From Bugula neritina (lineage: Eukaryota; Animalia; Bryozoa), in contig OZ037773.1 of the NCBI GenBank assembly GCA_964035545.1, positions 9,205,751-9,269,750 of the forward strand: a stretch of DNA of 64,000 nt, read 5' to 3'. Position 1 is the stretch's first letter; each line of letters begins with the position of its first letter. A program made the position numbers and the translations under genes. Of the stretch, positions 181-61,863 are shown one piece after another. The notes under the pieces were generated by a model, which worked only from the letters and a program-made list of their open reading frames with translations, had not been told where the DNA came from and ran no database searches.

Positions 181-275
181 GCACCAGTTTTGGATTGACT
201 TTGAAAAGACAGAAAAGAAGTCCGGTAACCCCACCACCTGGATTTCAGTCACTCGAGAAAAAATTCCAAAGCTAA
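181..275 (+). CDS. Prepropeptide P0, second coding exon only (signal exon lies left of the window): (G)TSFGLTLKRQKR-SPVTPPPGFQSLEKKFQS*
   Basis: Acceptor ttgcAG at 179-180, phase-1 frame, stop at 273-275. Inverted paralogue of the complete gene P3 (6504-7064). R-Q-K-R convertase site. Confidence 0.75.
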
Positions 276-1450
276 AGGGGACTTTAATAAACTTTTCAAG
301 AAACAAATGAACTCTTTCATTATGATTGGTTGAAATTTGTTATGTCTAATAAAATAATACGTTTTACATTTTCATGTTTTCACATGTGTTACTAATCCCT
401 ATTTGCGATTCATATGTTCAGACAACTGCATTGCATGGTTAACATAACTAAATAATATAAATTCACATTATACTGCCTGCAATTATCTTATCAAACTAAA
501 AACTTTCATGATATAGAAATCTTGATTGCCTTAATTGTAAGAGTTTGAACTGTTTGCAAAGTCAGCGGGCGCTTTGTTTTGATCTGATGCACAATTTCTA
601 TTTACATATTTGGTTCATTAGCAAATACCAAAAATAATTAATATAAGAAATCTGATACCATATCGTTAAAATAAAGAATGTATCAATGCAATGCTTATAA
701 CTGAATAATTTGTGATCCACATACTGCATGATAGAGTAAAACGTACAGTTGCCATGCAACTCTTGCTGCACACTTTATGTTGCTAAAAAGTTGTGAGCAT
801 ATAATTACATTTCCATACATTTATTATTTGAAATTGTGTCAAGAGCTAAACAAAGTTCTATTTAGTGGTACTGTTTTTCCTTGTAAAACATCCCATTCTA
901 AAAACAGTTATATTAGGGCAATTTTAGTAGCTACTTCACTATAGTCAAGTTGGAAAAGCTTACAGTCATGGAATTGTCTATTTTTAGTTACAGTTGAACA
1001 ATTTTGCATACAACATCTGGGTTCTAGGGTTGCCAATTACGATATATAAGAAGTTATGCTCTAAATATTTATCATAGACTTGTATATCGTCATATAAGAT
1101 AAAGCATTAGCAACAGGCAGAGTCAATAAAAAGAGAGAAACTTCAGAAGCTGGCAAGATTTCTATAATTCATATCAAAACAAAAATTTTAATGTGGTGTA
1201 TTTATGCGAAGCATCGCCTTTAAATCTGAAAAAAAAGAAGTTTCAAGTGAAATAAGTTACTGTCAGAAAACAATTGAGAACCAACTAAATATTTTACATC
1301 TAAACCACAAGTACTGAGTAGAATTGAATATGTAAATCATGTGAAAGTAGACATTACTGTTTGAAGGCGCATCACTGTATTGTTTGCTATATGTAATATA
1401 GTCTATACACATTATAGTATTTATTTCTTTATCAAAATCAAACCGAAAGT

Positions 1451-2220
1451 ATGAAGTTCCTTTCTGTAACCTTTCTAATGCTTGTCATGGCACTTTTCTC
1501 TATAAACATGTTGGGTAAGTAGCAGATTTGTACCGTATCTATAATAGCAAAATGTTATTTGCATTGAAGACCATTTTATCATAATATATAAAAAAATTAT
1601 GTATTTCTTGTCCATTTTCCCCCCTTCTGTATAAAAAATGAAATCAGTAGAAAATTAGAAGCACAAGTTACTGTTCACCATGTATTTGCTAAATATAATA
1701 TATTCAAATTAAACTTCATATATTTGAAAAATTGGCTGCATCTTTTTAACTGTTGAGTTACACAGTTTGAGTTCTTTTGACTGTATCAATTCCTATAATA
1801 TTTTACAAGACCATTGAAGGCAGCAATGTTTTATAAACACAATCTTTGAATAGTATAGGGTATTCCATTATGTTGATAACACACACTTATATACTAATGA
1901 TATTCGTGGTGTTGCCACCTCCAGATATAGCTCCTTATATATCGAAATGATTAGCACAGCTGCAGTCAAGTCTGAAGCTTGGTTCTCAGTTGGTCAGTTA
2001 TTCTATATACAATATTATTCATTGCATCATATTTTGGTATTCAATTACAGGAGCTAGTTTTGGATTGACTTTAAAGAGACTGCCAAAGAGCGAACTAAGG
2101 CCACCTAGCCAAGGGCTCCAGATAAGACTGCCAAAGATAGAACTAAGGCCACCCAGCCAAAGACTCCAGAAGTTTCTGAAAGATTATTTTAAAAAATTAA
2201 ATATTCCAAACTTCACTTAG
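1451..2220 (+). CDS. Prepropeptide P1, join(1451..1514,2051..2220): MKFLSVTFLMLVMALFSINMLGASFGLTLKR-LPKSELRPPSQGLQIRLPKIELRPPSQRLQKFLKDYFKKLNIPNFT
   Basis: Hydrophobic signal exon, GTAAGT donor at 1515, ttacAG acceptor at 2049-2050, frame preserved. Two 16-aa repeats. Paralogous to P2 and P4. Confidence 0.8.
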
Positions 2221-4539
2221 CCCAATGACCAAAGCTTTTATTGCACTAACTTTCAATAATTATTTTGAACTTTGCATCATTTATGCAACTGATTTTTAAG
2301 CTAACTCAAAATTGATTTCAAAAGATTCATCTTGCAGAAGAGATCCTGGTTTTGACAAAGAATTCAAGCTTCGTGCACATAAAAAAATAGAACGATTGTG
2401 GTTCGAGTGATAACAACTAAGAATTATACTGCACGGAGTTATAGGCAATTTCAAATTATAATCAGTTGGAAAACCGCCACCATATGTTACATTGGGCTTG
2501 ACTTGGCATAACCAAAAATTTCCATTGCGCATAATTTAGCTTAATTTTTTACCTGATTTATAGGTATGGTAATGTGTAAGATATAACAAACTTGGCATTT
2601 GAAGTGATTTATGATATATTGGCTTTAGGTATATTATATGTGCAATATTGCTATGACACTTCGAACATTAATATTAGATGAGCCAGAATTATAAACTGGA
2701 CAATATGAATAAATACCAGAAAGTAGGACACATAATTGTCTATAGAAGGTGAATTATAATTGTTAACTTTTTTATTTAGCCTAAGCGTTGATCAAACACT
2801 GTTCAAAATTGTGCGAGGCTACAGCTGCACCTTCTAGACTCGTGTTTTCCTGCCTACTAATCTTTTTGGCCACATATATAGTTTATCAAACTGATGAAAG
2901 TAACAGCGAGCTGGCATTAAACTTTTAGTTGTGGTTCTCAGATTGACCAAGCTTTCCCGTTCTCCTTGGAAGTTATGAGCTCAGTACAACTCATAGCCTT
3001 AGGTTAGTATAATATACTTGTTCAGTGTTGAGCTCTTGGTTTCTGAGAGGAAATTCATGCACTCTAACTAATTGAAGTTGTAAAGCTATGTCACAATTAT
3101 ACTACTTTACTTACAATTGATGACCAGTTTTGCTAGGAATTAGTAATTTATGACAAGAAAGAAATTGGATATTGCTGCGGAAGCACTAGCATAAATATAA
3201 AACTAAATAAAAAAAATACAATTGATTCAATTCAAATAATACCATAATTAAGAATGGGCTGAAATGGTATACTGACATGCAATGCAGCGAATTCAATCTA
3301 TGAACCATCTGCAAAAGCGTCAACATAATAGTTTGCTTGAATGCCCGGTGTAGCCTATTGGGTATGATTTGGCATAAGTTTGATTTATGTTGCAGATTAT
3401 AAGTGGTTTACGGTTGAACTTTGTATATTTCCATTTAGGTTTAAGGATATCATTATCATATGTGGTAATTATGCTGAAAACTCTGAAGTCCTGCATATTA
3501 ATTCAGTTTAGTTTTGATTATTATACTCTTCAGCTGGTGTTTCCACTACAGACTCTACCTTGGTTGCTTCCATATTAAAAACTGAATGGCAATTCTCGCT
3601 TTAATCAAATTATATACCAAACTTTGAGATGCTGCTAACTAAAATAAAATACTATCATGGAAAAATGTGCATTGTTTTTTTTCTCAAAATTAAAAAATAT
3701 AACTTTTATGGCTTATGCAACTGGTATTTATAACATCATATTAAAGTTATTCATAGCATAGCTATATTGACAGAATGCTTGAGTTAAATTTGAAGTTATA
3801 ATAACTAAACCAGAATCAGGTTTCAACTTTTTAGACCTGAAATATGACTTTTGTGTTTATATAACATATGAAAGTATAAAAATTCCATGTATAATTCAGC
3901 TTCTAGCAGTTGCTTGAATAAAAAAATTAGACCCAAGTTGAATGGATTCATTGAGCAAGAATAGTTTGGAGTTGGCTGTTTGTTACAGTTGAATGACTTC
4001 TCAAAATACTTCAGCAACAGGATAAATAGATGTATGCAATGCATAAAATGACTCGCTCAGGTTAGTTAATATATAGTTGGTTGCAGAAAACAGTCTTGGA
4101 AGAAGGTGCAGTGCTTTTGAGAGGATAATTTTCAAATTTGGTAAATCAAGTGACGAATCTAATTAAATCTATTGCAAAATGAAACACTATTACATACTTT
4201 TACACATATATCATTCTATATACAAAAACTTTGGATATTAAGACCTATTAGACTAATTCACTTTGATGTTTCACTTTAACTGCTGTATATATAAATTTAT
4301 AATTTGAAATTGCCTATAACTCCGTGCAGTATATTATTCTTAGTTATTATCACTCGAACCACAATTGTTCTATTTTTTTATGTGCACGAAACTTGAATTC
4401 CTTGTCAAAACCAGGATGTCTTCTGCAAAATTCATTTTTTGAAATCGATTTTGAGTTAGCTTAAAAATCAGTTGCATAAATGATGCAAAGTTCAAAATAA
4501 TTATTGAAAGTTAGTGCAATAAAAGCTTTGGTCATTGGG

Positions 4540-5339
4540 CTAAGTGAAGTTTGGAATATTTAATTTTCTAAAATAATCTTTCAGTAGCTTCTGAAATCCA
4601 TGAACGGGTGGCCTTAGTTCTCTCTTTGTCAGTCTTATCTGGAAGCCATGATTAGGTGGTCCTAGTTCTCTCTTTGTCAGTCTCTTTAAAGTAAATCCGA
4701 AGCTAGTTCCTGTAATTGAATGCCAAAATATGATGCAATGACTAATATTGTATATAGGATAACTGACCAACCGAGAACCAAGCTTCAGACTTAACTACAG
4801 CTGTGCTAACCATTACGCTATATTATATAAGGGGCTATAACTGGGAATGTCAACACCACGAATATCATTAGTATAAGTGTGTGTTATCAACATAATGAAA
4901 TACCCCATAATATTCAAGGATTGTGTTTATAAAACATTGATGCTTTCAATGGTATCGTAACATATAGGAATTGATACAGTCAAAATAACTCAAACTGTGT
5001 AAGTCAACAGTTAAAAAGATGCAGCCAATTTTTCAAAACTATAAAGTTTAATTTGAATATATTATATTTAGCAAATACATAGTAAACAGTAACTTGTGTT
5101 TCTAATTTTCTGCTGATTTTAATTTTTTATATAGCACGGGGAAAAAATAGACAAGAAATATATAATTTTTTTCACATATTGAAATAAAATGGTTTTCAAT
5201 GCAAATAACATTTTGCTATTATAGATAGTCAAGATAGTCAAAAAGAGTGTCTTCTGGTACAAATCAGCTACTTACTCAATATGTTTATAGAGAAAAGTGC
5301 CATGACAAGCATTAGAAAGGTTACAGAAAGAAATTTCAT
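4540..5339 (-). CDS. Prepropeptide P2, complement(join(4540..4709,5276..5339)): MKFLSVTFLMLVMALFSINILRTSFGFTLKRLTKR-ELGPPNHGFQIRLTKR-ELRPPVHGFQKLLKDYFRKLNIPNFT
   Basis: Signal exon with GTAAGT donor, canonical acceptor, two R-L-T-K-R sites. Lies in the inverted arm matching P1. Confidence 0.82.
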
Positions 5340-6503
5340 ACTTTCGGTTTGTTTTTGCTTAAAAAAACACTACTATGCGTATACACCATATTATATATAG
5401 CAAACAATACAGTGATATGCGCCTTCAAACAGTAATGTCTACTTTCACACGATTTACATATTCAATTCTAATCAGTACTATTGGTTTAGATGTAAAATAT
5501 TTAGTTGGTTCTCAATTGGTTTGTGACAGTCACTCATTTCACCTGAAACCTCTTCTTTTATCAGGGTTAAAGGCGATGCTTTGCATAAATACACCACATT
5601 AAAATTTTTGTTCTGATATGAATTATAGAAATCTTGCCAGCTTCTGAAGTTTCTCTTTTTTTATTGACTCTGCCTGTTGCTAATGCTTTATCTTATATGA
5701 CGATATACAAGTCTATAATAAATATTTAGAGCATAACTTCTTATATATCATAATTGGCACCCTTAGAACCCAGATGTTGTATGCAAAATTGTTCAACTGT
5801 AACTATGAATAGACAATTCCACGACTGTAAGCTCTTTCAACTTAACTATAGTGAAGTATAAGCTACTAAAATTGCCCTAATATAACTGTTTTTAGAATGG
5901 GATGTTTTACAATGAAAAACATTACCACTATATAAAACTTTGTTTAGTTCTTGACACAATTTCAAATAATAAATGTATGGAAATGTAATATGCTCACAAC
6001 TTTTTAGCAGCATATAATGTGCAGCAAGAGCTGCATATGACAGCTGTACGTTTTACTCTATCATGCAGTATGTGGATCACAAATTATTCAGTTATAAGCA
6101 TTGCATTGATACATTCTTTATTTTAACGATATGGTATCAGATTTCTTACATTAATTATTTTTGGTATTTGCTAATTAACCAAATATGTAAATAGAAATTG
6201 TGCATCAGATCAAAACAAAGCGCCCGCTGACTTTGCAAACAGTTCAAACTCTTACAATTAAGGCAATCAAGATTTCTATATCATGAAAGTTTTTAGTTTG
6301 ATGAGATAATTGCAGGCAGTATAATGTGACTTTATATTATCTAGTTATGTTAACCATATGCAATGCAGTTGTCTGAACATATGAATCGCAAATAGAGATT
6401 AGTAACACATGTGAAAACATGAAAATGTAAAACATATTATTTTATTAGACATAACAAATTTCAGCCAATCATAATGAAACAGTTCATTTGTTTCTGGAAA
6501 AGT

Positions 6504-7064
6504 TTATTGGAATTTTTTCTCGAGTGACTGAAATCCAGGTGATCCAGGTGGGTCTTTTATTGCACTTCTTTTTTGTCTTTTCGAAGTCAATCCAAAACTG
6601 GTGCCTGCAATATAATTATAAGTAATAAAATTATAACTTTTTTTTAGGAAACTTACAGGTTTTTGGAATATAGCCTTTAATGTACTACATGAATCTCCTT
6701 ACCTTGTTTTCCATATAGTAACAGACTGATTTAGCCTACTTGCTTAAATAAATGTTGGCTATAGAATAATCAAGGCTTTTGCTAAATATAAACCGAGCAT
6801 TTCGTGACTCGCAATAACTATAACTTGTATGTATCCAATATGTTGCTGAGAATAAGCATGGGATAAATTATAGCTCTTTGATACAAAAGCTAACCTAGAG
6901 TTTTAACAGTTTATAAAACACTGTTAACATAAAACATGTAGAAGGCTGCAATTAGAGAACCGGCGTTACTAAAAATGAACATGGCAATATGATGACTTAC
7001 CCCCGAGCATAGCGATCAATAGAAGTGTCACGGCAAGCTTTAGAAAGAGCTGAAGGTACTCCAT
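6504..7064 (-). CDS. Prepropeptide P3, complement(join(6504..6604,7001..7064)): MEYLQLFLKLAVTLLLIAMLGGTSFGLTSKRQKR-SAIKDPPGSPGFQSLEKKFQ
   Basis: 64-nt signal exon with GTAAGT donor, ttgcAG acceptor, phase 1, R-Q-K-R site. Candidate upstream non-coding-exon donors at ~7305-7325 on the minus strand. Confidence 0.82.
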
Positions 7065-7804
7065 TTTGTATCTTGCTATAAAAGACATATTCAATGATTA
7101 CATAAGAAGTAATATAGTATAAGTTGTTGTTTTTTGGCTTTGGATTTTTTTACAAGCCACTAGATATATTTGCGGACTGGATTCTATACAATTTCATCAC
7201 TTGGCGTGTAAAAGTTGAAATGAAATTAACTTATTTGAATTAAGTTTCAAGATAATACAACACAATACTAATTTTACAACTGCATGCTGAAGCTTTTACT
7301 TTACATTTACCTGAACTTACCTGGTTTAGGAATGAATCTCTTTTTAACAACTGAACTACTTTCCAGCGTGTGATCAACTTATATATCTGACTCTAAGAAC
7401 CAACCACAGATAACTACTTTTGCTAAAGTACTTTAGAGAAATCATTCAACTGTAACTTAAGCAAGCACATTCAAATTAATTAATAGCTTTAGTCAAGTTA
7501 TATATACTGCAGCTGCTAGAAATAGAATCATTATACGCGGGTTTTAAAGTTGGTTTGCTTGATCAAGTTAAACTGGCACAATTCGAAATTCAGTCAAATA
7601 AAACCACAGCAGATTTTGTGATATTAATAATCAAATATACATATACAACAATCTGCCTCCTTTTTACTCATGGAAAGGCAACTTCCAAAATATTCTAGAA
7701 TTATCAAACATTAGCTGTAGGCTTTATCAAAATCTAGTTTGAGATTAAGTAGTGTCTGCTGCATGATACATATATATTGCTATATGTGTCTGAAACATCT
7801 ACAA

Positions 7805-7965
7805 TGATGATACATATAAGATTTGACACATATATTATGATGACACATATAAAATTTGACACATTTATCATGATGACACATATGAGATATGACACATATG
7901 AGATGATGACATCTATATGATGACAATTGAATATAAAATACAACACATATAATCGATGATGACAC
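7805..7965 (+). repeat. Degenerate short tandem repeat with core gatgacacatat
   Basis: About 8 imperfect copies immediately upstream of hammerhead element copy 1. Confidence 0.7.
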
Positions 7966-7984
7966 AAAAAAAAAATATATATAT

Positions 7985-8020
<36 letters not shown>

Positions 8021-8278
8021 GATGACATTAAATGACATTAAATGATTGAGCACTCTCACCATGGTCACAAACTCAAGCTGCTAGCATTTACCAATGCTCG
8101 TGACTCCTAGGTGACCCCTAGAGTCACTTGAGCACTCTGGCTTGAGTTTACACACCTTTTAAATATGCTTTAGTAAAACTATGAGTTTTACTATTGCGAA
8201 GGTGTGGGCTATGGTACTCCGTTCTGTGCTGATGAGGGGACAAATCCCGAAACAGCTGCTGTCCACAGATTGAGATAT
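8021..8278 (+). mobile_element. Hammerhead-bearing non-autonomous retroelement (retrozyme or Penelope pseudo-LTR-like), copy 1
   Basis: Near-identical to 11915-12160 and 51313-51452, flanked on both sides by (AT)n. Confidence 0.75.
8223..8269 (+). ncRNA. Type I hammerhead ribozyme motif
   Basis: Stem I tctgtg/cacaga; core CTGATGA at 8229-8235; stem II gggg-acaaa-tccc; GAAA at 8249-8252; minimal stem III acagc-t-gctgt; GUC cleavage triplet ending at 8263. Confidence 0.85.
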
Positions 8279-8280
8279 AT

Positions 8281-8369
<89 letters not shown>

Positions 8370-9174
8370 ATATTGTATCGCATATATATGCAATACAATA
8401 TCCTATAACGTAATATATACATTCTAACGCAAATACTTTTATTCAAAACCTTATATAGTTAACTTAAAGCAAAACAATTTTCAATCAACCACATCCACAT
8501 CAAACTTTTAACCCTTTTAAGTTATTTATACCATAACACCACATTTGGAAGCCAAAAGAATTTTAAACCTTTAGTGCCAAGGAAAGCAGATTAATTTCAT
8601 ATATTATAATACTTTTGATCCACTTGGCAAGAGGTATCTATAACCATATTTTGCTGCCAATGTTTTTTTGCTGGCCAGCTATCCTACAGTTTCTGTAACA
8701 TTCATACAGCTCCACCTTCTTGCCAGCTATAAGGGTGCATTGCTGACTAATGCGCTACCTCACTTTAACGCTCACCTTTCACCAGTACATACACAGTCCT
8801 GATCAGTATCTGTTTTATTAGGGCTTATAATAAATCTTATTGAAGTACCCATTATATAAGCATGTCATGCCGCGGTTTATGGCATTAGCAAACCTTATTA
8901 GAGTGTTTTGTGGACAATTTTATATCAAATTACCAAACTGCAGTTAAACTATGGCTACTATAAAAGAAAGTATATACATATTTTTATAGAAAACATATAT
9001 TAATGAGTCTGTTTAGTACATGTGATTTTGTGCAGTTGACTTAACTACTAATTAAGTTATTTTACAAGGAAGCATAATGATTGACTCAAATTGGTTACTT
9101 TCTATCAAGTTTCTATTCCTGGACTTTTATGCACAAATTTATCGCATGCTGGACATATAAGATAATGGTTTTAG

Positions 9175-9698
<524 letters not shown>

Positions 9699-9699
9699 C

Positions 9700-11690: not shown

Positions 11691-11779
11691 GCAAATTTAT
11701 CTGACGAGTGCACATCGTTTTTGTGTACAAAACTACTAGTAATAAATGCCATTATATTAATCAAATCTCATTTTATTTC

Positions 11780-11857
<78 letters not shown>

Positions 11858-11861
<4 letters not shown>

Positions 11862-12155
11862 GAAACAGCTGCTGTCCACAGATTGAGATATTACGCTCTC
11901 ATTTAATGCTCAGCAATGACATTAAATGATTGAGCACTCTCACCATGGTCACAAACTCAAGCTGCTAGCATTTTGCAATGCTCGTGACTCCTAGGTGACC
12001 CCTAGAGTCACTTGAGCACTCTGGCTTAAGTTTACACACCTTTTAAATATGCTTTAGTAAAACTATAAGTTTTACTATTGCGAAGGTGTGGGCCATGGTA
12101 CTCTGTTCTGCGCTGATGAAGTGACAAATCCCGAAACAGCGGCTGTCTACAGATT

Positions 12156-12160
<5 letters not shown>
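11858..12160 (+). mobile_element. Hammerhead-bearing element, copy 2: partial tandem with a 271-bp period
   Basis: Starts with the 3' half of the ribozyme (cgaaacagctgctgtccacag at 11861) and ends with a degenerate full ribozyme (cgaaac at 12132). Embedded in (AT)n. Confidence 0.78.
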
Positions 12161-12245
<85 letters not shown>

Positions 12246-14529
12246 TATAATGCAGTTATATATATATATATATAACTGCATCATCGACAAGAATCTTATT
12301 GTCATTTATCATTATTTAGCTATATCTTGTTATAACAAAAAAAGCAGCGTATAACCAGAGTAGATCACAAAACAAAGCCTAAATGTATCTAATGTAATAC
12401 CTGAAATTAAGGATTGTTCTAGAAAAAAGCTCAGAGTTATCTGTCCTTTAGATTGTTTATAATAAAAAGAAAATCACTAGATAAACTACAGGAGTACATA
12501 ACTCTGAGTGATTGGACAGCTGCAGCTTATGAATAATGCACAAGAAAAATGAGAGCACCATAAAATAAATATACTAATATACTAGTTTACCAGTGAAGCT
12601 CTCACCATGATGGTTTGTTGGTAGAATAATTCAGTGAAATAAAAAACATAAAAATTAAGACCTGCAATAAATAAACTCAGCTTTGGAATGTAAAACAAAC
12701 AACTACAATTCCCAGTTCAGCAAAAATATCATTATTTTACATGCAAATTATAAGTATACTATTTTAGAATAGTTATAATCACTCAAACTTTAATGTTGGT
12801 CTACCGATGTTTAAACAATATATTACACTAGCAATATAAGGCAGTAAAACATATGGTAATTTGCTACAATTAAAAAAATAAATTAAGCTAAACTTGATAT
12901 GGGCATTCAATTTAAAGTAGTTAGGTTATTGTTTTAAATTTTTTATACTCAAAACATTGTTTTTATGTGCTTCAACATCAAAATTTAGTTTTATTCAATT
13001 TTCCGCTAAACTTCTTTGACTTACTTCGTTCTTATTAGTATTAGATTATTTTCCTTTGAACAGCCGATGTTTCAAGTTTTAGATATATTAGATGAAGGTT
13101 TTCCTGTTGTGCTGGCACCACTATACATTCTTCAGTAGTTTACATGAAAGGTCTATATTATTCTTAAGATAGTTTGTTAATCTTTCATCAAGCCATTGGG
13201 AAGGGTTATATGGTGCCTAGATTTTAGAATGCATCAACTCATGTGACTCAGTCACTCCAGTATATCAGTTCAGCTATATCAACACATCTGTTTTATTAAC
13301 AGCCTATAGTTTCACGTTATGTTGATTGAAGTAGTATGTATTAGCTTCTCACCTATAGTATCCATGTAATTTTTATCCAAGAACTTGCTAAAATTTCACT
13401 TTGATGTAGTTTTTCAAACCGTATATAATTGGATAAATAATATTACTAAAAATATTTGTTATCTTTCACAATTTTTTGCGAATTCATTTGTCTTTTAAAC
13501 AGCAATTGAGAGAAGACAACTGTCAAGCATCACCATGCATAAAATGATATTCTAACACAGTTTGGCATGTAATGTTTATTTGTCAAGTTGAATGCGTCCT
13601 TATAATTGTGAGACTTCAAACAGTTTGCAGTTTGCTTTGTTTTGATCTGATGCACAATCTCTATTTACATATTTTGTTCATTAGCAAATACCAAAATTAA
13701 TATAAGAATTATCATACCATATCGTTAAAATAAAGAATGTATAGATGCAATGCTTATAACAAAATAATTTGTGATCCCATATACTGCATGATAGAGTAAA
13801 ACGTACAGTTGTCATGTGCAACTCTTGCTGCACATTAAATGCTGCTAAAAAGTTGTGAGCATATAAATACATTTTCATACATTTATTATTTGAAATTGTG
13901 AAAAGAACTAAACAAAGTTTTATATAGTGGCACTGTTTTTCCTTGTAAAACATCCAATTCTAAAAACAGTATTTAGGACAATTTTAGTAGCTACTTCACT
14001 GGTTAAGTTAAAACAGCTTACAGTCATGGAATTATCTATTTATAGTTACAGTTGAACAATTTTGCACACGAAATCCGGGTTCTAGGGGTGCCAATTATGA
14101 TATTATATAAGAAGTTATGCTTCAAATATTTATTATAGACTTGTACATCGTCATATAAGATAAGGCATTAGTAGAAAGCTGAGTCAATACAAAAAGGGAA
14201 ACCTCGAAAGCTGGTAAGATTGCCATATTTCATGTCAAAACAAAGATTTTAATGTGGTGTATTTATGCGCATCATTGCTTTTAACTCTGATAAAGTAAAA
14301 GGTTTCAACAGTAAAATGAGTGACTGTCACAGAAAAGTTGAGAACTAACTACATTTTACATCTAAACCACAAGCACTGAATATAATACAATTTAGACATC
14401 ATATGTGAAAGTTATAGACATTACTGTTTGTTAGGGCGTGTTACTGTATTGTTTGCTATATATAATATAGTTTATATATGCATTAATAATAAAGTATTTA
14501 TTTTTTTTTAGCAAAATCAAACCGAAAGT

Positions 14530-15371
14530 ATGAAGTTCCTTTCTGTAACCTTTCTAATGCTTGTCATGGCACTTTTCTCTATGAACATGTTAGGTAAGTA
14601 ACTGATTTTTACTATAGAAGACACTCTTTTTGACTATCTTGACTATCTATAATATCAAAATGTTATTTTCATTGAAGGCCATTTTATTATGAATATATAA
14701 GAAAAGTATATATTTTTTGTCCACGCTTTTCTCATTTTGTAAGAAAATGAAATCAACAGAAAATTAGAAGCACAAGTCACTGTTTACTACGTATTTACTA
14801 TAAACTATGATGAATTCAAATGAAACTTTATAGTTTTGAAAAATTGGCTTCATCTTTTCAACTGCATGTTGACTTGCACAGTTTAAGTTATTTTGACTGT
14901 ATCAATGTTTATATATGTTACAAGACCATTGAAGGCAACAATGTTTTATAAACACAATCCTTGAGTATTATGGGGTATTCCATTATGATGATAACACACA
15001 CTTATATACTAATAATATTTGTGGTGTTGACATTCCCAGTAGCCCCTGTGGTATATATCGTATTGGTTAGCACAGCTGTAGTTAAGTCTGTTAAGCTTGG
15101 TTCTCGGTTGGTCAGTTATTCTATATACAATATTATTCATTGCATCATATTTTAACATTCAATTACAGGAACTAGTTTCGGATTGACTTTAAAGAGACTG
15201 ACAAAGAGAGAACTAGGACCACCTAATCATAGGCTCCAAATGAGACTGACAAAGAGAGAACTAAGGCCACCTAGTCATGGGCTCCAGATGAGACTGACAA
15301 AGAGAGAACTAAGGCCACCCATCTCCGGACTCCAGAAGCTTCTGGGAGGTCTCAGAAGAGGCTTTCAATAA
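14530..15371 (+). CDS. Prepropeptide P4, join(14530..14593,15169..15371): MKFLSVTFLMLVMALFSMNMLGTSFGLTLKRLTKR-ELGPPNHRLQMRLTKR-ELRPPSHGLQMRLTKR-ELRPPISGLQKLLGGLRRGFQ
   Basis: Signal exon, canonical splice sites, three 48-bp repeats each opened by R-L-T-K-R. Confidence 0.85.
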
Positions 15372-17540: not shown

Positions 17541-18273
17541 ATGAAGTTCCTTCAGTTCTTTCTGATGCTGTTGGTTGTACTTTTATCTATGAACATTTTG
17601 GGTAAGTTTCTCACTTTTACCTACTTTTACTCTGCACTCTCTCTCTGCCTATAGTATAAGTCATGTGTCAGCCACTTGCTTGTTTTACTTGTAAAGAAAT
17701 TAAATAGCTTGTTTAAGCGTTCGCTTTGTGAACACGAAGTCGTGGGTTCGAGCCCGGACAAAGGCCATTGGTGATGTTAGGAAGAGCATCCAGTCATAAT
17801 TGCTCCTGTGCCTCATTTGAACAAGTCCTTAGCCTGTTCTATCAAAAACCCTTTCCATCAGGGTTTCTCACAGGGATACAACTTTTATAGCAAAGAACTA
17901 ATTATATAGTAACTTTGTATACATTGTAGCAAGTTTGGTGACTTATATTATGTATTTCTTACAAAGTATTGCTTATAATTACTAGCATTCAGTTAAGAAT
18001 ATAGAATAATTGTTTATACGAAGTCACTGTCAGCTATGGCTTCTAAACTGTCGCTCATATATAAGACTTGCTTACCTTAACTCCTTCTTATAACAAAAAT
18101 GTTGATACTTTAAAGCAATCAGTTACAGCTGTGATATAATTAATTTCACTGTAAGTATTGGCTATAGCATGATATTTGGTTTGGTTTTTTTAGGAACCAC
18201 TTTTGGGTTGAAAGAAAGACAGTTGAAAAGAATTAAAAGAGGTCGGCCTGCAGGTGGATATGGATTCCAATAA
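17541..18273 (+). CDS. Prepropeptide P5, join(17541..17601,18194..18273): MKFLQFFLMLLVVLLSMNILGTTFGLKERQLKRIKR-GRPAGGYGFQ
   Basis: 61-nt signal exon, GTAAGT donor, T-rich AG acceptor at 18192-18193, R-I-K-R site, 10-aa mature peptide. Missed by the ORF track. Confidence 0.85.
17705..17877 (+). mobile_element. tRNA-derived SINE-like element in the P5 intron
   Basis: A-box-like tagcttgtttaagcg and B-box gggttcgagccc (~17744-17755). About 170 bp absent at the paralogous position (~26990) in the P6 intron. Confidence 0.65.
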
Positions 18274-18788
18274 CTAAGCATGTTTCTTATAAGTGGATTA
18301 TTTGAATATGTTACAAGTCTCATGTAATAATAATATGTTATATGAAACAGTTATAATGCATTTTATTACTGGTTGCTAATTATGAAGACTATGTTGCATA
18401 TCTATTATATATATAGCCAAATAATGGAAAGCTGAAATAAATGTTTTTGCTATTTTTATCACAATATTAATATATATTACACAGCATGTACATTACATAT
18501 TATATTTGGGTCATTTTACTTAATTCAGTACACACTGGATATCTTCAGTTTTTGGCTATCTTTCACAATTTAGCTAGTAATGAACATGGTCTTTTGGCCA
18601 AAACTATAAGTAAAACACCAATAAATACACCTAAATAATCAAAGTTCTTTTTAATTTTGCTTTATTTCTTATGTTTTTTCCTAATCATTCAGCTAGTTTT
18701 GGTTACCAACGTACAGTTACGGTTTTTTCGTAACATCGGCACATATAGAATATTAAGTGCATATGACAATGACCTGTGCTTTAATGTT

Positions 18789-18799
18789 GGGGAATCCCC
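18789..18799. promoter_or_regulatory. Candidate NF-kB/Rel site GGGGAATCCCC (second copy 27963-27973)
   Basis: Matches GGGRNNYYCC consensus in very AT-rich DNA ~0.5 kb downstream of P5 and P6. Function not shown. Confidence 0.3.
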
Positions 18800-19148: not shown

Positions 19149-19251
<103 letters not shown>

Positions 19252-19593: not shown

Positions 19594-20160
19594 GCAGATT
19601 TCAAAAACATTTTAAAATTTTAAACTACAAAATTAACTATAAGCATTGAATAGCATTACACAGCAGGTCCTTTCGATATCAAATGTTATCTATGCATATA
19701 ACTTTGCCAAGCATTTTAACAGTTGAATAATTTTTGAATAACTCATCAAACTATATTATAGTAACAGTACGTATTCATTGCTTTTTAAGCTGTAGAATTT
19801 CATTGCGAAATTTGACATATCGTTCAGGGTTGTAATTGACGTCATATGTGTATCATACTCTATTGATGTTTGTATGCATGATCAACTTCTCTCAACTGTC
19901 ATATTTTATGGCTACAAGTGTCAGGTGAAGGAATGGAAGGAATTTTTTAATTATCTATGCCAAGTCTTAAAGTAGGCAGGATAATGGAATGCATACAATT
20001 AGGTATCCTACACAACAGATATAAATGAACCTGCTTCATTTAATATGCATGTATGAAAAACTTGACAAATTAAAAACCATTAAAAACCTATGGTATATTT
20101 AATTGTTTTATAATTACATCATGCTTAAGTGTATATTATTTGGTCAGCTTTAGTTTTTAA

Positions 20161-20240
20161 AAAGCAGTTTGGGATTGAGCTCAAAAAGTTTGAAGAGAGT
20201 TAAAAGAGGCGTTCCAACTCCAGGCGGTTGATTTCAATAA
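20161..20240 (+). pseudogene. Orphan second exon of the peptide family: SSLGLSSKSLKRVKR-GVPTPGG*FQ*
   Basis: Homologous to P5 exon 2. The expected acceptor reads AA instead of AG. TGA at 20229-20231 replaces the GGA of GFQ. No signal exon found upstream. Confidence 0.65.
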
Positions 20241-24497: not shown

Positions 24498-24652
24498 GAA
24501 CTAGTTTCGGATTGACTTTAAAAAGACTGACAAAAAGAGAACTAGGACCACCTAGTCATGGGCTCCAGCTAACACTGACAAAGAGAGAACTAAGGCCACC
24601 CAGCCACGGACTTCAGAAGCTTCTGGGAGGTCTCAGAAGAGGCTTTCAATAA
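24498..24652 (+). pseudogene. P4 duplicate with intact exon 2 (GTSFGLTLKRLTKR-ELGPPSHGLQLTLTKR-ELRPPSHGLQKLLGGLRRGFQ*) but signal exon deleted
   Basis: Alignment to the P4 locus shows ~14315-14620, including exon 1, missing at ~23948. Confidence 0.78.
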
Positions 24653-26821: not shown

Positions 26822-27389
26822 ATGAAGTTCCTTCAGTTCTTTCTGATGCTGTTGGTTGTACTTTTATCTATGAACATTTTGGGTAAGTTTCTCACTTTTA
26901 CCTACTTTTACTCTGCACTCTCTCTCTGCCTATAGTATAAGTCATGTGTCAGCAACTTGCTTGTTTTACTTGTAAAGAAATTAAATAGCCTGTACAACTT
27001 TTATAGCAAAGAACTAATTATATAGTAACTTTGTATACATTGTAGCAAGTTTGGTGACTTATATAATGTATTTCTTGCAAAGTATATTACTTATAATTAC
27101 TAGCATTCAGTTAAGAATATAGAATAACTGTTTATACGGAGTCACTGTCAGCTATGGCTTCTAAACTATCGCTCATATATAAGACTTGCTTACCCTAACT
27201 CCTTCTTATAACAAAAATGTTGATACTTTAAAGCAATCAGTTACAATTGTGATATAATTAATTTCACTGTGTGTATTGGCTAGCATGATATTTGGTTTGG
27301 TTTTTTTAGGAACCAGTTTTGGGTTGAAAGAAAGGCAGTTGAAAAGAATTAAAAGATATCGGCCTGTAGGTGGAGTGGGATTCCAATAA
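26822..27389 (+). CDS. Prepropeptide P6, join(26822..26882,27310..27389): MKFLQFFLMLLVVLLSMNILGTSFGLKERQLKRIKR-YRPVGGVGFQ
   Basis: Tandem duplicate of P5 with identical signal exon and canonical splice sites. Confidence 0.85.
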
Positions 27390-28840: not shown

Positions 28841-29477
28841 CAGACTTCAAAAACATTTTAAAATTTTAAACTACAAAAATGACTATAAGCACTGATTAGC
28901 ATTACACAGCAGGTCCTTTCGATATCAAATGTTATCTATGCATATACTTTTGCCAAGCATTTTAACAGTTGAATAATTTTTGAATAACTTATCAAACTAT
29001 ATTATAGTAACAGTATTCATTGCTTTATAAGCTGTAGAATTTCATTGCGAAATTTGACATATCGTTCAGGATTATAGTTGATGACATATGTGTATCTTAT
29101 TCTATTGATGTTTGCGTGCATGATCAACTTCTCTCAACTGTCATATTTTATGGCTACAGGTGTCAGGTGAAGGAATGGAAGGATTTTTTTAATTATCTAT
29201 GCCAAGTCTTAAAGTAGGCAGGATTTGTATGAAAACAAAGTACCTGCATGGATGTTCATGCTCCACTAAGAAAGTTATATTTTTCCATCTATAATGGATA
29301 ATGGAATGCATACAATTAGGTATCCTACACAACAGATATAAATGAACCTGCTTCATTTAATATACATGTATGAAAAACTTGACAAATTAAAAACCATTAA
29401 AAACCTATGGTATATTTAATTGTTTTATAATTACATCATGCTTAAGTGTATATTATTTGGTCAGCTTTAGTTTTTAA

Positions 29478-29557
29478 AAAGCAGTTTGGGATTGAGCTCA
29501 AAAAGTTTGAAGAGAGTTAAAAGAGGCCCTCTAACTCCAGGCGGTTGATTTCAATAA
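29478..29557 (+). pseudogene. Orphan second exon, duplicate of 20161-20240: SSLGLSSKSLKRVKR-GPLTPGG*FQ*
   Basis: Same lost acceptor and same TGA (29546-29548) as the 20161 copy. Confidence 0.65.
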
Positions 29558-33991: not shown

Positions 33992-35921
<1,930 letters not shown>

Positions 35922-38123: not shown

Positions 38124-44618
<6,495 letters not shown>

Positions 44619-44779
44619 CACTATATTTATATTCTTTAGAATATATAGGGTATTACTATTTGTAGTTAATACCTATAGTTTTATGCTACATGTTCTTAAG
44701 GAGTGTTTTTGTATCTGCAAGTTGATGTATTTAAACACATGTAGGTGTTGTTTCACATTGAACCTGTTATTTCTAGACA

Positions 44780-45000
44780 TTGCATTGTGTGCTGCATTGT
44801 ATTGTATTGTATTGTATTGTATTGTATTGTATTGTATTGTATTGTATTGTATTGTATTGCATTGCATTGCATTGCAATATATTACATTGTCCTGTATTGT
44901 GTGCGGCATTACATTATAATTATTGTAGTACATTGCATTGTGTGCTGCATTGCATTATAATTATTGTATTACATTGCATTATATTGCATTGCATTGTGCT
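44780..45000. repeat. (ATTGT/ATTGC)n pentamer repeat downstream of gene A
   Basis: Direct inspection. Confidence 0.9.
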
Positions 45001-46838: not shown

Positions 46839-54394
<7,556 letters not shown>

Positions 54395-54566
54395 CACTAT
54401 ATAAGTTATATTCTTTCGAATACCCATAGGGTATTATTAGTTGTTATAGTTAATATATAGTTTTATGCTACATGTTCTTGAGCAATGTTTTTGTATCTGC
54501 AAGTTGATTTATTATAGTTGTTGTTTCACATCAGACTCATTTTTTGTGGACATTGTGTTTTGTGCT

Positions 54567-55700
54567 GTATTGCATTTTATTTTATTGTCTTGCAATGTAT
54601 TGCAGTGTATTGCAGTGTATTGCAGTGTATTGCAGTGTATTGCAGTGTATTGCATTTTATTTTATTGTCTTGTATTGTATTGCAATGTATTGCAGTGTAT
54701 TGCAGTGTATTGCAATGTATTGCAATGTATTGCAGTGTATTGTATTGTATTGCAATGTATTGCAGTGTATTGCAGTGTATTGCAGTGTATTGCAGTGTAT
54801 TGTATTGTATTGCAATGTATTGCAGTGTATTGCAGTGTATTGCAGTGTATTGCAGTGTATTGCAATGTATTGCAGTGTATTGCAGTGTATTGCAGTGTAT
54901 TGCAATGTATTGCAGTGTATTGCAGTGTATTGCAGTGTATTGCAGTGCGTTGCAGTGTATTGCATTGTATTGCAGTGTATTGCAGTGTATTGCAGTGTAT
55001 TGCAGTGTATTGCAGTGTATTGCAGTGTATATTACAGTGTATTGCAGTGTATTGCAGTGTATTGCAGTGTATTGCAGTGCGTTGCAGTGTATTGCATTGT
55101 ATTGCAGTGTATTGCAGTGTATTGCAGTGTATTGCAGTGTATTGCAGTGTATATTACAGTGTATTGCAGTGTATTGCAGTGTATTGCATTTTATTTTATT
55201 GTCTTGCAATGTATTGCAGTGTATTGCAGTGTATTGCAGTGTATTGCAGTGTATTGCAGTGTATTGCATTTTATTTTATTGTCTTGTATTGTATTGCAAT
55301 GTATTGCAGTGTATTGCAGTGTATTGCAATGTATTGCAATGTATTGCAGTGTATTGTATTGTATTGCAATGTATTGCAGTGTATTGCAGTGTATTGCAGT
55401 GTATTGCAGTGTATTGTATTGTATTGCAATGTATTGCAGTGTATTGCAGTGTATTGCAGTGTATTGCAATGTATTGCAGTGTATTGCAGTGTATTGCAGT
55501 GTATTGCAATGTATTGCAGTGTATTGCAGTGTATTGCAGTGTATTGCAGTGCGTTGCAGTGTATTGCATTGTATTGCAGTGTATTGCAGTGTATTGCAGT
55601 GTATTGCAGTGTATTGCAGTGTATTGCAGTGTATATTACAGTGTATTGCAGTGTATTGTATTGCATTACAGTGTATTGCAGTGTATTGTATTGTGTGCTG
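54567..55700. repeat. (GTATTGCAGT)n 10-bp satellite with a 614-bp higher-order duplication, downstream of gene B
   Basis: Variant block tgcattttattttattgtct at 54571/55185 and 54651/55265, offset 614. Confidence 0.95.
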
Positions 55701-56407
55701 CCTTGCATTAACTCCTATTGTTGTGTGTGTGTTGTTTGTGAATGCATGTGTATGTGTTTTGACTTCTGATAAAGGTTATCAACATCGTAAAATTTATAAT
55801 TTTATTACTACAAAATATTAATATGCAATTGTTGTACTGTTTAAAAACATGCATGATGTATTATGATACAATATCACATTATGAGGATAAATTATATTTT
55901 TAATGCAAATTTATAATTTATTTTATGTTGCCATCTCTCAGTCTGAAATATTGGCTACAATAGAATACTTAGATGGCTTTTTTGTTATCCGTCAAGTATA
56001 ACTTGATTGACCTTCAACTTTGATAACTTAAGGCTTAAGCAAAAAGCAATCTAAATGTATGTGCAACGATATCACATTACTATCACCTATAGCTACCGGC
56101 ATATACCGTCACATAGCTTATATAATGTAAGTATATAGCTACCAGCTATAATGCCATCAGTCTTATCTGAAAGATTTTATTCAGCTCTGCGATATTGCAT
56201 AGCAAAAGTGGTACATTGAGTATTATAAGTCTCAAGTCTATGCCTTCAGCTAAAAAACTTTCTAAAACGACTAATATATCGTAATATAGCTCAGAATGTC
56301 ATCATGGCTACCATAAGCAACAAGCCTCTATGTTATTCCAGGATCATCAAATATTGAATTCATGTTTTATAGATATCAAAGTCAGTGTAGACCAGAATAT
56401 GTATATG

Positions 56408-56969
56408 GCTATTTGATGCCCTTTGTAAACGTCATGAATTAGTGAAGTGGACAGCATAAAAAAATGATAATTGAGAAGGCCAAGGCTATATAATTATTAC
56501 CATATAAGTACGCTGTCTAATCCCCAAAGTAATAACTAAATAACGATGTTTACAAGGAGTTATTACTCCTATTCTGAAAACAGCCTATTAAGTTATCATG
56601 CACAGCACAAAAATCTTTACGAGTGGCTTTTACAATGCAATGCAACTCGGAGAAATTGCAACCCGGCCAAATTGAAATTTTGACCAAAAATCGCGAAGGT
56701 ATAAAGGCAACTTAATTGGTTGAAATTTCTCCGAGTTGCATTGCATTGTAAAAGCCACTCGTAAAAATGTTTGTACTGTAATAACTTAATCAGCCAATTT
56801 CAGAATATGAGTAATAACTCTTTGTAAACATCGTTATTTAGTTATTACTTTGGCAATTAGACAACGTATACTTATACGGTTATAATTATATAGCCCACGC
56901 CTTCTCAATTATCGTTTTTATGCTGTCCACTTCACTAATTCACAACGTTTACAAAGGGCATCAAATAGC
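56408..56969. mobile_element. Fold-back / palindromic MITE
   Basis: Imperfect ~255-bp inverted arms (gctatttgatgccctttgtaaacg ... cgtttacaaagggcatcaaatagc) around a ~55-bp spacer. Absent from the paralogous flank at ~45635. Confidence 0.8.
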
Positions 56970-58756
56970 TATTATGTGAGTCAAATTTCAATTTCAGAAA
57001 GTGAGCAACCGCATCAATATGATTTCAACGAGTTTCAGCTTGACTATAAAGGGGTACCCGGACAAGCATTATTAACTTAAACTCGGTAGGCCTACTTTTT
57101 TCAGCAGAGGTATAAACGCAACTTAAATAATAATTTACTCTCCTTAATATTTGTTCTGTGTCAGAACTACAAATATAAGCTAATTGAATGAGTTGAGCAC
57201 AAGCAGCTGTTTTAAATTGACAGCATTCATTATTAATGTAGGTTAAAAAGAAAATAAATGTTACTAGTTGATGCATGCTTTGTTTAACTAAAATATTAAT
57301 TAAATGTATTTGTAAAATACCTTTTGCTGCAACTATAATATAGAACGAAAAACGACATTCTACATTATAGAATTATTGTATACATAAGTGAGAAATGGGA
57401 CTGGTCATAATATTATGATAGTTCTCACTAAACTAACATTCCTCTAATATTGCTATCTATTATGGTATAAAGTGATTTTTATAAAATAGGATATCTCCAG
57501 GTATAAGATAACATCCATTTATCATCCAATTGATATATAACAAAGTAGAATAATTAGTATAATATTATAGACAGTTTCTCGTCAATCGAAATGTCATTTT
57601 GGTTTTATATATATGAGCTTTAACAAATACACATTTACATGTAAGCTATCAAATTACCATCACTCCAGCTATATAGCTGTCAGCTAATCTTCATCGCATA
57701 GCTCTGATTCTATAGTTACCATGGCTATAATGCTTAAGATGTTTTGTATAAAAGATATTTGACTCCATGATATTATGTAACATATTCACTTTGACTGGCG
57801 CCTAAATAAATCTTTCACTTGACCAACTTTTTAAACTGACTACATAATATGTTATAATAACTTTGAGTTTGGGTGCCTCTAAGAAACATGAGGAGTGCAA
57901 TACTATATGTAAAGTTTTTCTAGGATCATCAAGGGTTGAAAGTTCAATAAATTATATAGTTATCAAAGTTTATAATGTATGCCAGCATATATTAAGCTAT
58001 CAACCTAATATACTATTATAAGGGTTATAATACATCAATCATTTCTACTATAGGATTCAGTTATATGATGGCTGCACTGGGTGATTAATGACACATAAAA
58101 AGACCAGCTATACGAGCCATGTATTTAGTTCAGACTGTAGAGTATAGAGTAACCAAGCAGAAGGATTGAGGAATTTATGTCAAATTAGGTGTTGTTTGCT
58201 TTCTGATATAAGCATTGTGTACCATGCATATTCTTTGAAGTTGTTGGGGAACAGCTTTTCAATTGTTTCTATTTACCCCATTGATGTTACAGTGTAAATT
58301 TTAACAAATATATATAATTAACAATTGAAGCACAAACATATAACAGTCGGTTTCTCTAATATATTTTTTGATAAATACTTGTAGATAAGGTTTTGTTTTT
58401 CTGGCAGAACACCTAATCAATGCAAACACAAAAAGTGTAAATAAAGTATGAGATTTACTTCTTATGATATAATCTCAATATTGTAATATATGTAACTATT
58501 ATATACAAGTAAAGATATTATACTGATAGACTTGCAAAACGCAGCAAATTAGGATATTTCATTTAACTTGCAATTATATGGATATATAATAGGCATCAAA
58601 ATGAACTGGTAGCAAAATATTCATTAAAGAAGTATCATAATATAGATGAAACTAACTTGAGTTAAATATTTATTTCAGAAAATTTTATCAAATATTATTT
58701 AAGTAAGATAAGAGTAATATATATGAGAAAGATGAGCTTAGTCAGCTTTGGACATG

Positions 58757-59623
58757 TTAACCATCAGTGCAGTTTGGAGGGCAATTACCGCGTCTTCCAC
58801 CACCTCCACCACGTTGCCTGAGAGATCTCTTTTGAATGAGGAGATCTTTTAACTTAAATCTGTTTGTCTGGGATTCAGCCACTAAAATATATATATTTGA
58901 TCTACACTGCAGTAATGCATGGTTAACGTTTTAACAATAATTAGGGATGGATAATAGAATTAATTTCTGCCTTTTGAATTATCAATCTTATAGTTATTTA
59001 AAATTCAACTTCAAAATGATACTTTTTAATGATTATATTGGTGTAAGTGACCATTTTTGAGTTTAATATAACTTTATTTATTTATCTTTATGAACCTAAA
59101 AGCCGAAGTTATATTTCTTTTACTCATTAAAACTATACTATAAGTACCACGAAAGCAATTTAATTCTAAAAATAAAAAAACTTGAACTGAATATAACTGT
59201 ATGCTAGCTGTATGCATTTTAAAATAACAAAAATAAGCCTATATATGAAGAAACTACAAAATATTTGGCCAAGGAGACAAAATAAAACAGGTATATATAC
59301 AGAAAAAAAATATATACAATCAGTCTTAAGTAGTTTTATCTAATAATTATATTAACATTATAAGAACATGGCTCTTAAATTAGTGCTGTTGGAAACAAAC
59401 CGAATAAAGCCAGTTTGATTTAAATGTCTATGTATACTAACATAATTATATGATGATTGTTTATAGACAGTTTTAACATGAATGTTATTTAAATGTTAAC
59501 ATGCAATTCACAGGCTTACACTCACATAATTAGTAAACATGCAATACACCTCAGCTAGAACTACACACCTGTGAGACAGAGAACCAAGAGAATAACCAGC
59601 AGGAAGTGAGTGAGAAACTTCAT
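58757..59623 (-). CDS. Prepropeptide P8, complement(join(58757..58881,59569..59623)): MKFLTHFLLVILLVLCLTVAESQTNRFKLKDLLIQKR-SLRQRGGGGGRRGNCPPNCTDG
   Basis: MKFL signal exon, GT donor, ttttAG acceptor, phase 1. KR-SL junction shared with P7. Two Cys and a C-terminal Gly. Confidence 0.8.
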
Positions 59624-61769
59624 AGTAACTACAGGTTATGATCTTATTTCAGCAATATAAAACGACCTAGATGTTAGTATAACAGTGTGACGAATGCTGT
59701 ATTTCTGACGCTACATCAGGATCTGTTAAAGTAGCCAATCAGCTAACCTTTAGGTTATAATAAGATGGAGTCGTCGGTTACTTATGTACCCAGTGAAGCA
59801 GAACTCAATAACACGTGATAGATGACTTATAGGACTTTGTTATTCCAGGCTTCCATGCAGAGTTGAAAGAATGTCTGCATATATTTTACTTATTGAAAGC
59901 TATTACTTTATTGAACATGATAGCTTGTATTCTATAATGTATATTCATTCTTCAAAAGCTTTATTGCAGGTTTTCAAGTTGTTCTATATCAAAGTTATAG
60001 TGTATGCCAGCATCATTCATTACCACTAACCCACGCAGTGCTATCCTAAGGGTAATGCAGTACATCAATCATTTATATCCAGACTAATAAGGATTTGATG
60101 ATTATATAGATTAGTATTTTTGAATAAATTAGTATAGTTGGGGGACTTGATATTTAACAGAGTCAATACTAATTTATTGCTATCTTCATAATTTTTCCTG
60201 ATTCAAAGTGCATGGAGATCAACTATATAACTAACTATATATATTAACACAGGGTTGAGCACAAGCAGCAGGTTCAAATTGACAGCATTTATAATTAATG
60301 TAGTTTTATAAGAAGAAAATTAAAATGTTGCTTTATGGTGCTAAAATAGTATTTAGATGTGTTTATAAAATATCTATCCAACTATAGAATGAGAAAAAAC
60401 ATTCTTGTATAGTATTATAGAATTATTGTATACATAAGTGAGTACTGTGACTGGTCATAATATTATAATAGTTCTCACCAAACTAACATTTCTCACATAT
60501 ATAAAGTGATTTTTATAAAATATGATATTCCCATACAGGTATAAGATATAATATCTATAATTTATCATCTATAATTGAATATAACAACTTAGAATAATTA
60601 GTAATATTAGACAGCCTCTCATCAATTTAAATGTCATTTTGGTTCCATGCTACATGTAAGCTATCAAATTATAACCATCACTCTAGCTACATATAGCTGT
60701 CAGCTAATCATCATCACATAACTCTGATTCTATAAGTTACCATGGCAATGCTTAAGATGTTTTGTATAAAAGATATTTGACTCCAAGATATTATGTAACA
60801 TATTCACTTTGACTGGCGCCTAAAGAAATCTTTCACTTGACCAACTTTCTAAACTGACTATATAATATTTCGTAATAGCTTTGAGTTTGGGTGCATGCCT
60901 CTAAGAAACATGAGGAGTGCAACACTATATGTTAAGTTTTTCCAGGATCATCAAGGATTGAAAGACCCATATAATATAGTTATCAAAGTTAATGCCAGTA
61001 TAATATTATAGTTCCATTAATCTAATGCTATAATTATAGGAGTAATATACATCAATCATTTCTACTAGGATTTTAAATTTTATGATGGCACTGGGTGATT
61101 AATAACACATAAGTAAGACCTGCTATAAGCGTCATGTATTTAGTTCAGACTGTAGAGTATTGAGTAACCAATTAGCAGAACTTATTTATGTCAATTGTTA
61201 TAGATGTTATTTGCCTTCTGATGTAAGCATAGTGTACAATATTCTTCAAAGTTATTGGGAGGACAACTTTCCGATTGCTTTCATTTACAGTTTTACACCA
61301 TTGATGTTACAGTGTCAATTTCACCAAACATAATTTACCTTCATGGCAACACAAAAATACAATCTGTTTTTCTAATATATTTTTTAATAAATGCTTTTAT
61401 AGATGAGATTTTGTTTTAACAGCCCACCATCAAATCAAACACAACAGGTGTACAGAATAAGTATGAGATTTACTTCTTATAATAGTCGCAATCTTGTTAT
61501 ATATGTAATTATCATATAACTATAAAGATATTATACTGCATGATAGACTAGCAAAATATAGCAAATGGGATATATTTCTTTCAACTCAATGCTATATGGA
61601 TATAATATATATATTAAAATCAAATGGTATAGCAAAATATTCTGTAAAAAAAGTTCATACATATGAAACTAAATGAAGCTATCAATTAATTTTTTTTTAA
61701 ACATTTTTTCAAACATTATTAGGTAAGATAAAAGCAACATGAGCAAGAAAAGCTTATTGATTGTAAATG

Positions 61770-61863
61770 TGGGCAATTATCTCTTCCTCCACCATGTTAT
61801 CTGGGAGATATCTTTTGAATGAGGAGATCTTTGAACTCAGATCTGTTGGTCTGAGACTCGGCC
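61770..61863 (-). pseudogene. Disrupted duplicate of P8 exon 2: AESQTNRSEFKDLLIQKISPR*HGGGRDNCP
   Basis: Homologous to 58757-58881. KR changed to KI, in-frame stop at 61797-61799, and upstream sequence replaced by unrelated DNA. Confidence 0.78.

Follow-up and report, generated by a model that had tools for sequence, protein, structure and literature searches.

A 64,000-nucleotide stretch of the genome of the bryozoan Bugula neritina (assembly GCA_964035545.1, contig OZ037773.1, forward-strand positions 9,205,751 to 9,269,750), hereafter called the window, carries 13 loci that, on balance, appear to represent a lineage-restricted, tandemly duplicating family of genes for small secreted prepropeptides processed by proprotein convertases. 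Spliced genes of such a small size routinely escape annotation, and this cluster is visible from sequence alone. A first-pass annotation of the window had listed eight complete genes, one gene truncated by the window edge and four disrupted copies, and the same count was reached when profiles and BLAST were applied: eight loci have both exons open, one is cut by the left edge and four are disrupted relics. Genes are designated below by the strand and the position of their ATG.

The signal exons were sought by scanning for hydrophobic exons that are led by an ATG and end in a phase-1 GT donor. Eight mutually homologous exons were found, with ATG at +1451, -5339, -7064, +14530, +17541, +26822, -35921 and -59623; they measure, in the same order, 64, 64, 64, 64, 61, 61, 61 and 55 nt, the differences amounting to whole codons only. 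An nhmmer profile of these exons recovers exactly the same eight (E-values from 1e-14 to 1e-26), everything else in the window scoring at E >= ~1. The architecture proposed earlier for this part of the gene, a 55-64-nt signal exon mostly beginning with M-K-F and followed by a phase-1 intron, was thereby borne out: the phase-1 intron follows in all eight genes, its donor reading GTAAGT in seven of them and GTGTGT at -59623, and M-K-F opens every signal exon except that of -7064, which starts with M-E-Y. The predicted signal peptide consists of M-K and a hydrophobic stretch of ~15 residues, with Kyte-Doolittle window means, used here as a heuristic, of 2.8-3.8. If left unspliced, the exon 1 of subtype A1 (see below for the subtypes) reaches a stop within two codons. 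A pyrimidine tract and an AG are located 11-25 nt 5′ of the ATG in seven of the eight genes (5339, 7064, 14530, 17541, 26822, 35921 and 59623), and because they precede nearly every ATG, either a 5′ non-coding exon with an intron in the 5′ untranslated region or spliced-leader trans-splicing is likely at these genes. Note also that both copies of a neighbouring gene (ATG 38124 and its paralogue) have a pyrimidine tract and AG 3 nt upstream of their ATG. The A2 genes have an in-frame stop after the upstream AG and ahead of the ATG, which fixes this ATG as the start.

Each of the eight signal exons is paired with a second exon on the same strand, located 0.4-1.8 kb further 3′ and preceded by a pyrimidine tract with an AG. 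A profile of the second-exon start recovers ten copies; two relics, at about 20.2 and 29.5 kb, were detected in addition by a profile restricted to the type A copies, and one more near 61.8 kb by BLAST. A dibasic site followed by G-[FLMIV]-Q occurs 11 times in the window, whereas shuffled sequence would be expected to yield 0.7. The pro-part, ~7-15 residues long, is basic, and the earlier statement that it ends in KR or R-x-K-R before a short product applies to nine of the ten open second exons, where the site directly precedes each predicted product, the exception being the units of +1451. All six products quoted in the first-pass annotation are present in the translation at the expected places. 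The 11-residue product among them would require a cut at a single Arg; what the sequence has is a 16-residue unit. For the multi-copy precursors we infer the ends of the products, because the repeating unit is 16 codons (48 nt) long.

Ten of the loci, located between 0 and 30 kb, are clear paralogues and are called type A. Their second exons open, in alignment, with a common short motif that is followed by KR or R-x-K-R, and a core that contains proline and ends in G-[F/L]-Q is common to all type A products; these products are short (~10-16 residues), with a net charge near 0 to +2. Subtype A1 includes +1451, -5339, +14530 and an exon-2-only copy at 24498, and has two or three tandem 48-nt (16-codon) units, each made of one peptide and an invariant spacer ending in KR. 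The gene +14530 (14530-15371; exon 1 14530-14593, exon 2 15169-15371) contains three units, each after KR, and its stop overlaps an AATAAA. Two units, again each after KR, are found in -5339 (minus strand, 4540-5339; exon 1 5339-5276, exon 2 4709-4540), which is the inverted duplicate of +1451 (1451-2220; exon 1 1451-1514, exon 2 2051-2220). The latter also has an open frame with two 48-nt units, but these have lost their flanking dibasic sites, the AG upstream of the ATG is gone too, and neither AATAAA nor ATTAAA occurs within 300 nt, which suggests that this locus is probably decaying; the eight genes called complete at first are thus complete in having both exons open, while at least this one shows signs of decay. 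The copy at 24498-24652 (plus strand) is an open second exon with two units, the signal-exon part of the duplicated block being missing.

Subtype A2, with a single 10-residue product, is represented by +17541, +26822 and two relics. In +17541 (17541-18273; exon 1 17541-17601, exon 2 18194-18273) the product follows R-x-K-R, and its tandem duplicate +26822 (26822-27389; exon 1 26822-26882, exon 2 27310-27389) differs in the product at three of the ten residues. The A2-like second-exon relic at 20154-20240 (plus strand) has one premature stop and no recognisable signal exon, and its twin at 29471-29557 (plus strand) carries the same kind of disruption, which dates the break before the 9.3-kb duplication described below. 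Subtype A3, also with a single product, consists of -7064 (minus strand, 6504-7064; exon 1 7064-7001, exon 2 6604-6504), where the product follows R-x-K-R, and of the edge copy at 181-275 (plus strand), a profile match in which pro-part, R-x-K-R, product and stop are present and the signal exon lies beyond the left edge.

The remaining three loci, between 34 and 62 kb, are called type B and have KR followed by Gly/Arg-rich basic products. B1, the gene -35921 (minus strand, 33992-35921), has its exon 1 at 35921-35861, a 1.77-kb intron and its exon 2 at 34086-33992, where KR precedes a strongly basic product of 15 residues. In B2, the gene -59623 (minus strand, 58757-59623; exon 1 59623-59569, exon 2 58881-58757), the KR is followed by 22 Gly/Arg-rich residues with two Cys and a C-terminal Gly; Cys is absent from the products of type A and B1. 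A B2-like second-exon relic at 61740-61863 (minus strand) shares 84.6% identity with the B2 exon across 78 nt, has a stop and deletions and is without a signal exon. The architecture of type B is that of type A, and for B1 common descent has modest support, since the B1 signal exon aligns colinearly with those of A1 and A2 (pairwise E-values of 2e-4 and 4e-3). The proposition that all 13 loci are demonstrably one family was rejected, as the type A profile reaches the B1 signal exon only at an E-value of 0.15 and misses B2.

The B1 intron contains a (TA)n array, 600 bp long (34141-34740), and a small element of ~777 bp (34973-35749) with 20-nt inverted ends that are 95% complementary and with TTAA at both outer edges; the latter looks like a small non-autonomous DNA transposon.

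Self-comparison of the window accounts for how the copies are related. An inverted duplication (1-2461 versus 6781-4297) is 90% identical, a 9.3-kb tandem duplication (12.6-21.4 kb versus 22.2-30.7 kb) is 92-96% identical, and an older similarity of 83-88% connects blocks of the inverted-duplicated and tandem-duplicated regions. A further segment is triplicated at 57-64 kb. Because its last copy (63410-63936) matches the 3′ flank of the B2 gene at 72% identity, the cluster, which exceeds the left edge, probably runs beyond the right one too, and a further family member just outside the right edge is possible. The birth-and-death evolution that had been claimed for the cluster is therefore upheld: birth by segmental duplication of three ages, and death by decay as seen in the four relics, are documented by these comparisons.

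The products change faster than their surroundings. Identity in the product-coding part is 81-89% in each of four recent pairs, versus 90-98% for introns and flanks (Fisher p-values of 3e-5, 9e-4, 3e-3 and 1e-2), except that the 1451/5339 pair reaches 78% in its 3′ flank. In the A2 pair no difference is seen over 461 nt of 5′ flank together with exon 1, and 5.5 non-synonymous versus 0.5 synonymous changes fall in the ten codons of the product, a pattern that fits diversifying selection, the counts being small. The signal exon has few non-synonymous changes. The variable mature peptide of the first-pass annotation hence needs qualification, for the fast divergence of the product is confirmed, but type A retains its common core. 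Between the old paralogues A1, A2 and A3, only exon 1 (with ~35 nt upstream of it and the donor) and the ends of exon 2 can be aligned, whereas the introns cannot, and this confinement of the alignment to the exons argues that the exons are under constraint. Codon phase and exon-length classes are kept across the copies, and in several genes the stop codon overlaps or closely precedes an AATAAA.

Searches for relatives were made throughout with single exons or exon alignments in collections that cover small eukaryotic peptides poorly, so that a failure to find a match is weak evidence for an undescribed family. Within these bounds no described family was matched, in line with the first-pass annotation, which had not recognised the family. 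A word-indexed search of 5.8 billion protein clusters gave no relative of the +14530 second exon or of an alignment of eight second exons, metagenome contigs contained no match to peptide patterns or to a DNA pattern, the second exons matched nothing among Pfam and PDB sequences, and full-text literature queried with peptide strings and motifs returned nothing relevant. The two weak candidates of an exhaustive phmmer search of 1.84 billion representatives, P0001 and P0002, were discarded as unrelated repeat proteins, the similarity residing within a repeated acidic/proline unit.

The favoured reading of these features is the following route from gene to product. A precursor of 45-90 residues would enter the secretory pathway and be cleaved by signal peptidase near the exon junction; subtilisin-like proprotein convertases would then cut after the dibasic sites, a carboxypeptidase would trim the basic residues, and linear Pro/Gly-rich peptides of ~10-16 residues would be released. 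In type A the core ending in G-[F/L]-Q is kept while the surrounding residues change quickly among paralogues, and the genes themselves arise by segmental duplication and disappear by decay. A fixed core within a fast-changing surround suggests peptides that act on a changing partner, be it a receptor that co-evolves with them or some target belonging to another organism, and the rapid turnover of the genes favours a role between organisms or in reproduction. We tentatively propose, as a plausible reading that falls somewhat short of probable, that the cluster encodes undescribed, taxon-restricted bioactive secreted peptides under diversifying selection around G-[F/L]-Q, that they are used between organisms in a skin, gland or reproductive secretion, and that the cluster extends past both edges of the window.

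Several observations weigh against the main reading, that of a family of convertase-processed secreted peptides, or against parts of it. B2 shows no sequence link to the type A profile that would tie it to type A by descent. In the A1 pairs, 15 non-synonymous versus 7 synonymous changes were counted, both classes being raised, and their rapid divergence may stem in part from decay of one partner or from conversion across repeat units. At the 3′ end, the conserved F-Q-stop coincides in part with a poly(A)-like signal, and its conservation may reflect a constraint on the DNA itself. Simple rules underlie the prediction of the signal peptide and of the cleavage sites, no orthologue in another genome was found in the collections searched, and the amidation signal usual for neuropeptides occurs in none of the products, save for the terminal Gly of B2.

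This last point bears also on another explanation, a possible but rather doubtful one, in which the genes encode endogenous signalling peptides of a neuropeptide- or hormone-like kind, the G-[F/L]-Q core being what a receptor recognises and the multi-copy precursors raising the yield. The core is indeed conserved across the divergent subtypes A1, A2 and A3, the precursors with two to three copies and invariant spacers resemble classical neuropeptide precursors, and the products are short and weakly charged; the conserved core and the multi-copy precursors, a pattern known also from receptor-binding peptides, thus leave room for an internal signalling role. Duplications as recent as those seen here, both tandem and inverted, together with four relics and a rapidly changing product, are, however, unusual for conserved internal signals, and type A is devoid of the amidation signal and of relatives found in other organisms.

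An antimicrobial function in host defence, by peptides of the proline-rich or cationic linear kind, seems unlikely to us. It would agree with the layout and the clustering, which are like those of tandem immune-peptide families, with the strongly basic B1 product and with weak similarity between the signal exons and the Drosophila DIM family (Pfam PF08194), the only named family hit by the peptide genes. These matches nevertheless score 9.6-15.8 bits, below the cut-off of 20.8, and cover positions 1-20 of the 36 in the profile, that is, the signal part alone, while type A peptides with ~10-16 residues and a charge of about 0 to +2 would be atypical both of membrane-active and of proline/arginine-rich antimicrobial peptides.

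Slightly less likely again is that most of the cluster is dead DNA, in which one ancestral small gene has been copied segmentally and the frames have stayed open for no other reason than the youth of the copies. Relics make up four of the 13 loci, +1451 looks decayed, and for many copies an identity of 84-96% holds over entire blocks with their introns. Moreover, the frames of +1451 and -5339 extend into sequence that corresponds to the 3′ flank past the +14530 stop, and -5339, like +1451, has no AATAAA or ATTAAA within 300 nt. Yet the introns of A1, A2 and A3 have diverged fully, while exon 1, the splice sites, the phase and the start of exon 2 were kept, and the differences in exon 1 length are multiples of three, neither of which is expected under neutral decay. 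That the exons belong to one or more larger genes, for instance as alternative first exons, instead of forming separate two-exon genes is very improbable: the pyrimidine tract and AG ahead of seven of the eight ATGs make at least one further 5′ exon or a spliced leader likely, but the loci are on both strands, each second exon terminates in a stop codon that a poly(A) signal often accompanies, and A2 has its in-frame stop between AG and ATG.

Turning to the surroundings of the cluster, the window is AT-rich, with 27-33% GC per 4-kb bin and 30% overall, and contains no long non-repetitive open reading frame (ORF); Rfam and tRNA scans of it came back empty. The observed/expected ratio of CpG over the whole window is 0.42, with values of 1.3 for TG/CA and 1.59 for GpC, which suggests that cytosines are heavily methylated in the source genome. 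Taken together, the depletion of CpG, the excess of TG/CA, the spliced genes and a neighbour with CTHRC1_C domains indicate a methylated, animal-like eukaryotic genome; no human or vertebrate match came from the protein, Pfam or literature searches. This neighbour, a gene for a secreted protein, is present on the plus strand as two tandem multi-exon paralogues, at 38124-44613 and at ~46850-54400, with approximate exon bounds. Translations of its exons match Pfam CTHRC1_C at 37.2, 20.7 and 18.8 bits, suggesting a Cys-containing N-terminal part followed by about three CTHRC1_C domains; the exons correspond to blocks of 91-96% identity within units whose overall identity is 72-80%. One exon of this gene, used as a query, matched neither a protein of similar length nor a solved structure, a literature search on its domains was equally unproductive, and ten ORFs of the window proved absent from the protein collection. 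The window has numerous long arrays of (TA)n and (CA)n. Other repeats include a 1.1-kb array with a 10-nt unit at 54566-55694, which gives rise to spurious ORFs as long as 434 codons, a perfect (TGAG)62 at 52208-52456, and two direct repeats of 335 bp (8031-8365 and 11915-12249), 95.8% identical and 3.5 kb apart, each with part of an (AT)n array.

With several duplication ages, relics and products that outpace their introns, the cluster offers a compact case for studying the birth, diversification and death of peptide repertoires. If transcripts and peptides were confirmed, a peptide family would be added to the source lineage, and the proline-containing core ending in G-[F/L]-Q would be a motif to seek in relatives. 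No general principle is changed by it, since the layout is classical for secreted peptides.

Among known systems, bradykinin-related peptides are short, proline-rich peptides of amphibian skin and wasp venom, which in frogs are produced from multi-copy precursors. A likeness to them, in an Arg-Pro start and a Gly-aromatic pair, involves few residues and differs by subtype; we take it as a lead only, and comparison of all second exons with Pfam and PDB at E-values up to 10 gave no match to the kinin/kininogen family. Fungal repeat proteins processed by Kex2 and alpha-factor-like precursors share with type A1 a signal followed by repeats that are preceded by KR; unlike them, the window has an animal-like context, with introns of 0.4-1.8 kb, CpG depletion and CTHRC1_C neighbours, and its genes are without spacer dipeptides. 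The Drosophila DIM/Bomanin genes (PF08194) are alike in being clustered in tandem and in encoding tiny secreted peptides with a signal of the M-K-F type, but, as shown above, the similarity is below the cut-off and limited to the signal, and the product parts of the window remain unmatched.

The comparison with conotoxin and frog-skin precursors made in the first-pass annotation holds in part. The two exons and the order of signal followed by KR are shared with the frog-skin precursors, whereas the pro-part here is short and basic and there is no long acidic propiece such as is found in frog-skin and cone-snail precursors; the cysteine framework of conotoxin-like toxins is likewise lacking, type A and B1 being without Cys and B2 having two. 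In the dermaseptin/brevinin precursors of frog skin, the signal peptide is encoded on its own exon, a long acidic propiece follows and there are many paralogues. Differently from these, the pro-part in the window is basic, with ~7-15 residues, the products share a core, no Pfam family was matched and the base composition (30% GC) is unlike that of known frog genomes; common to both are a coding sequence split in two by an intron directly behind the signal, the KR before the product, a conserved signal in front of a fast-changing product, and the many paralogues. Finally, multi-copy neuropeptide precursors are unlike the genes of the window in that the latter have no Gly-basic amidation signal, underwent recent duplications, left relics and have no relatives found, but both have a signal, tandem short peptides and invariant KR spacers, with two versus three units among the paralogues.

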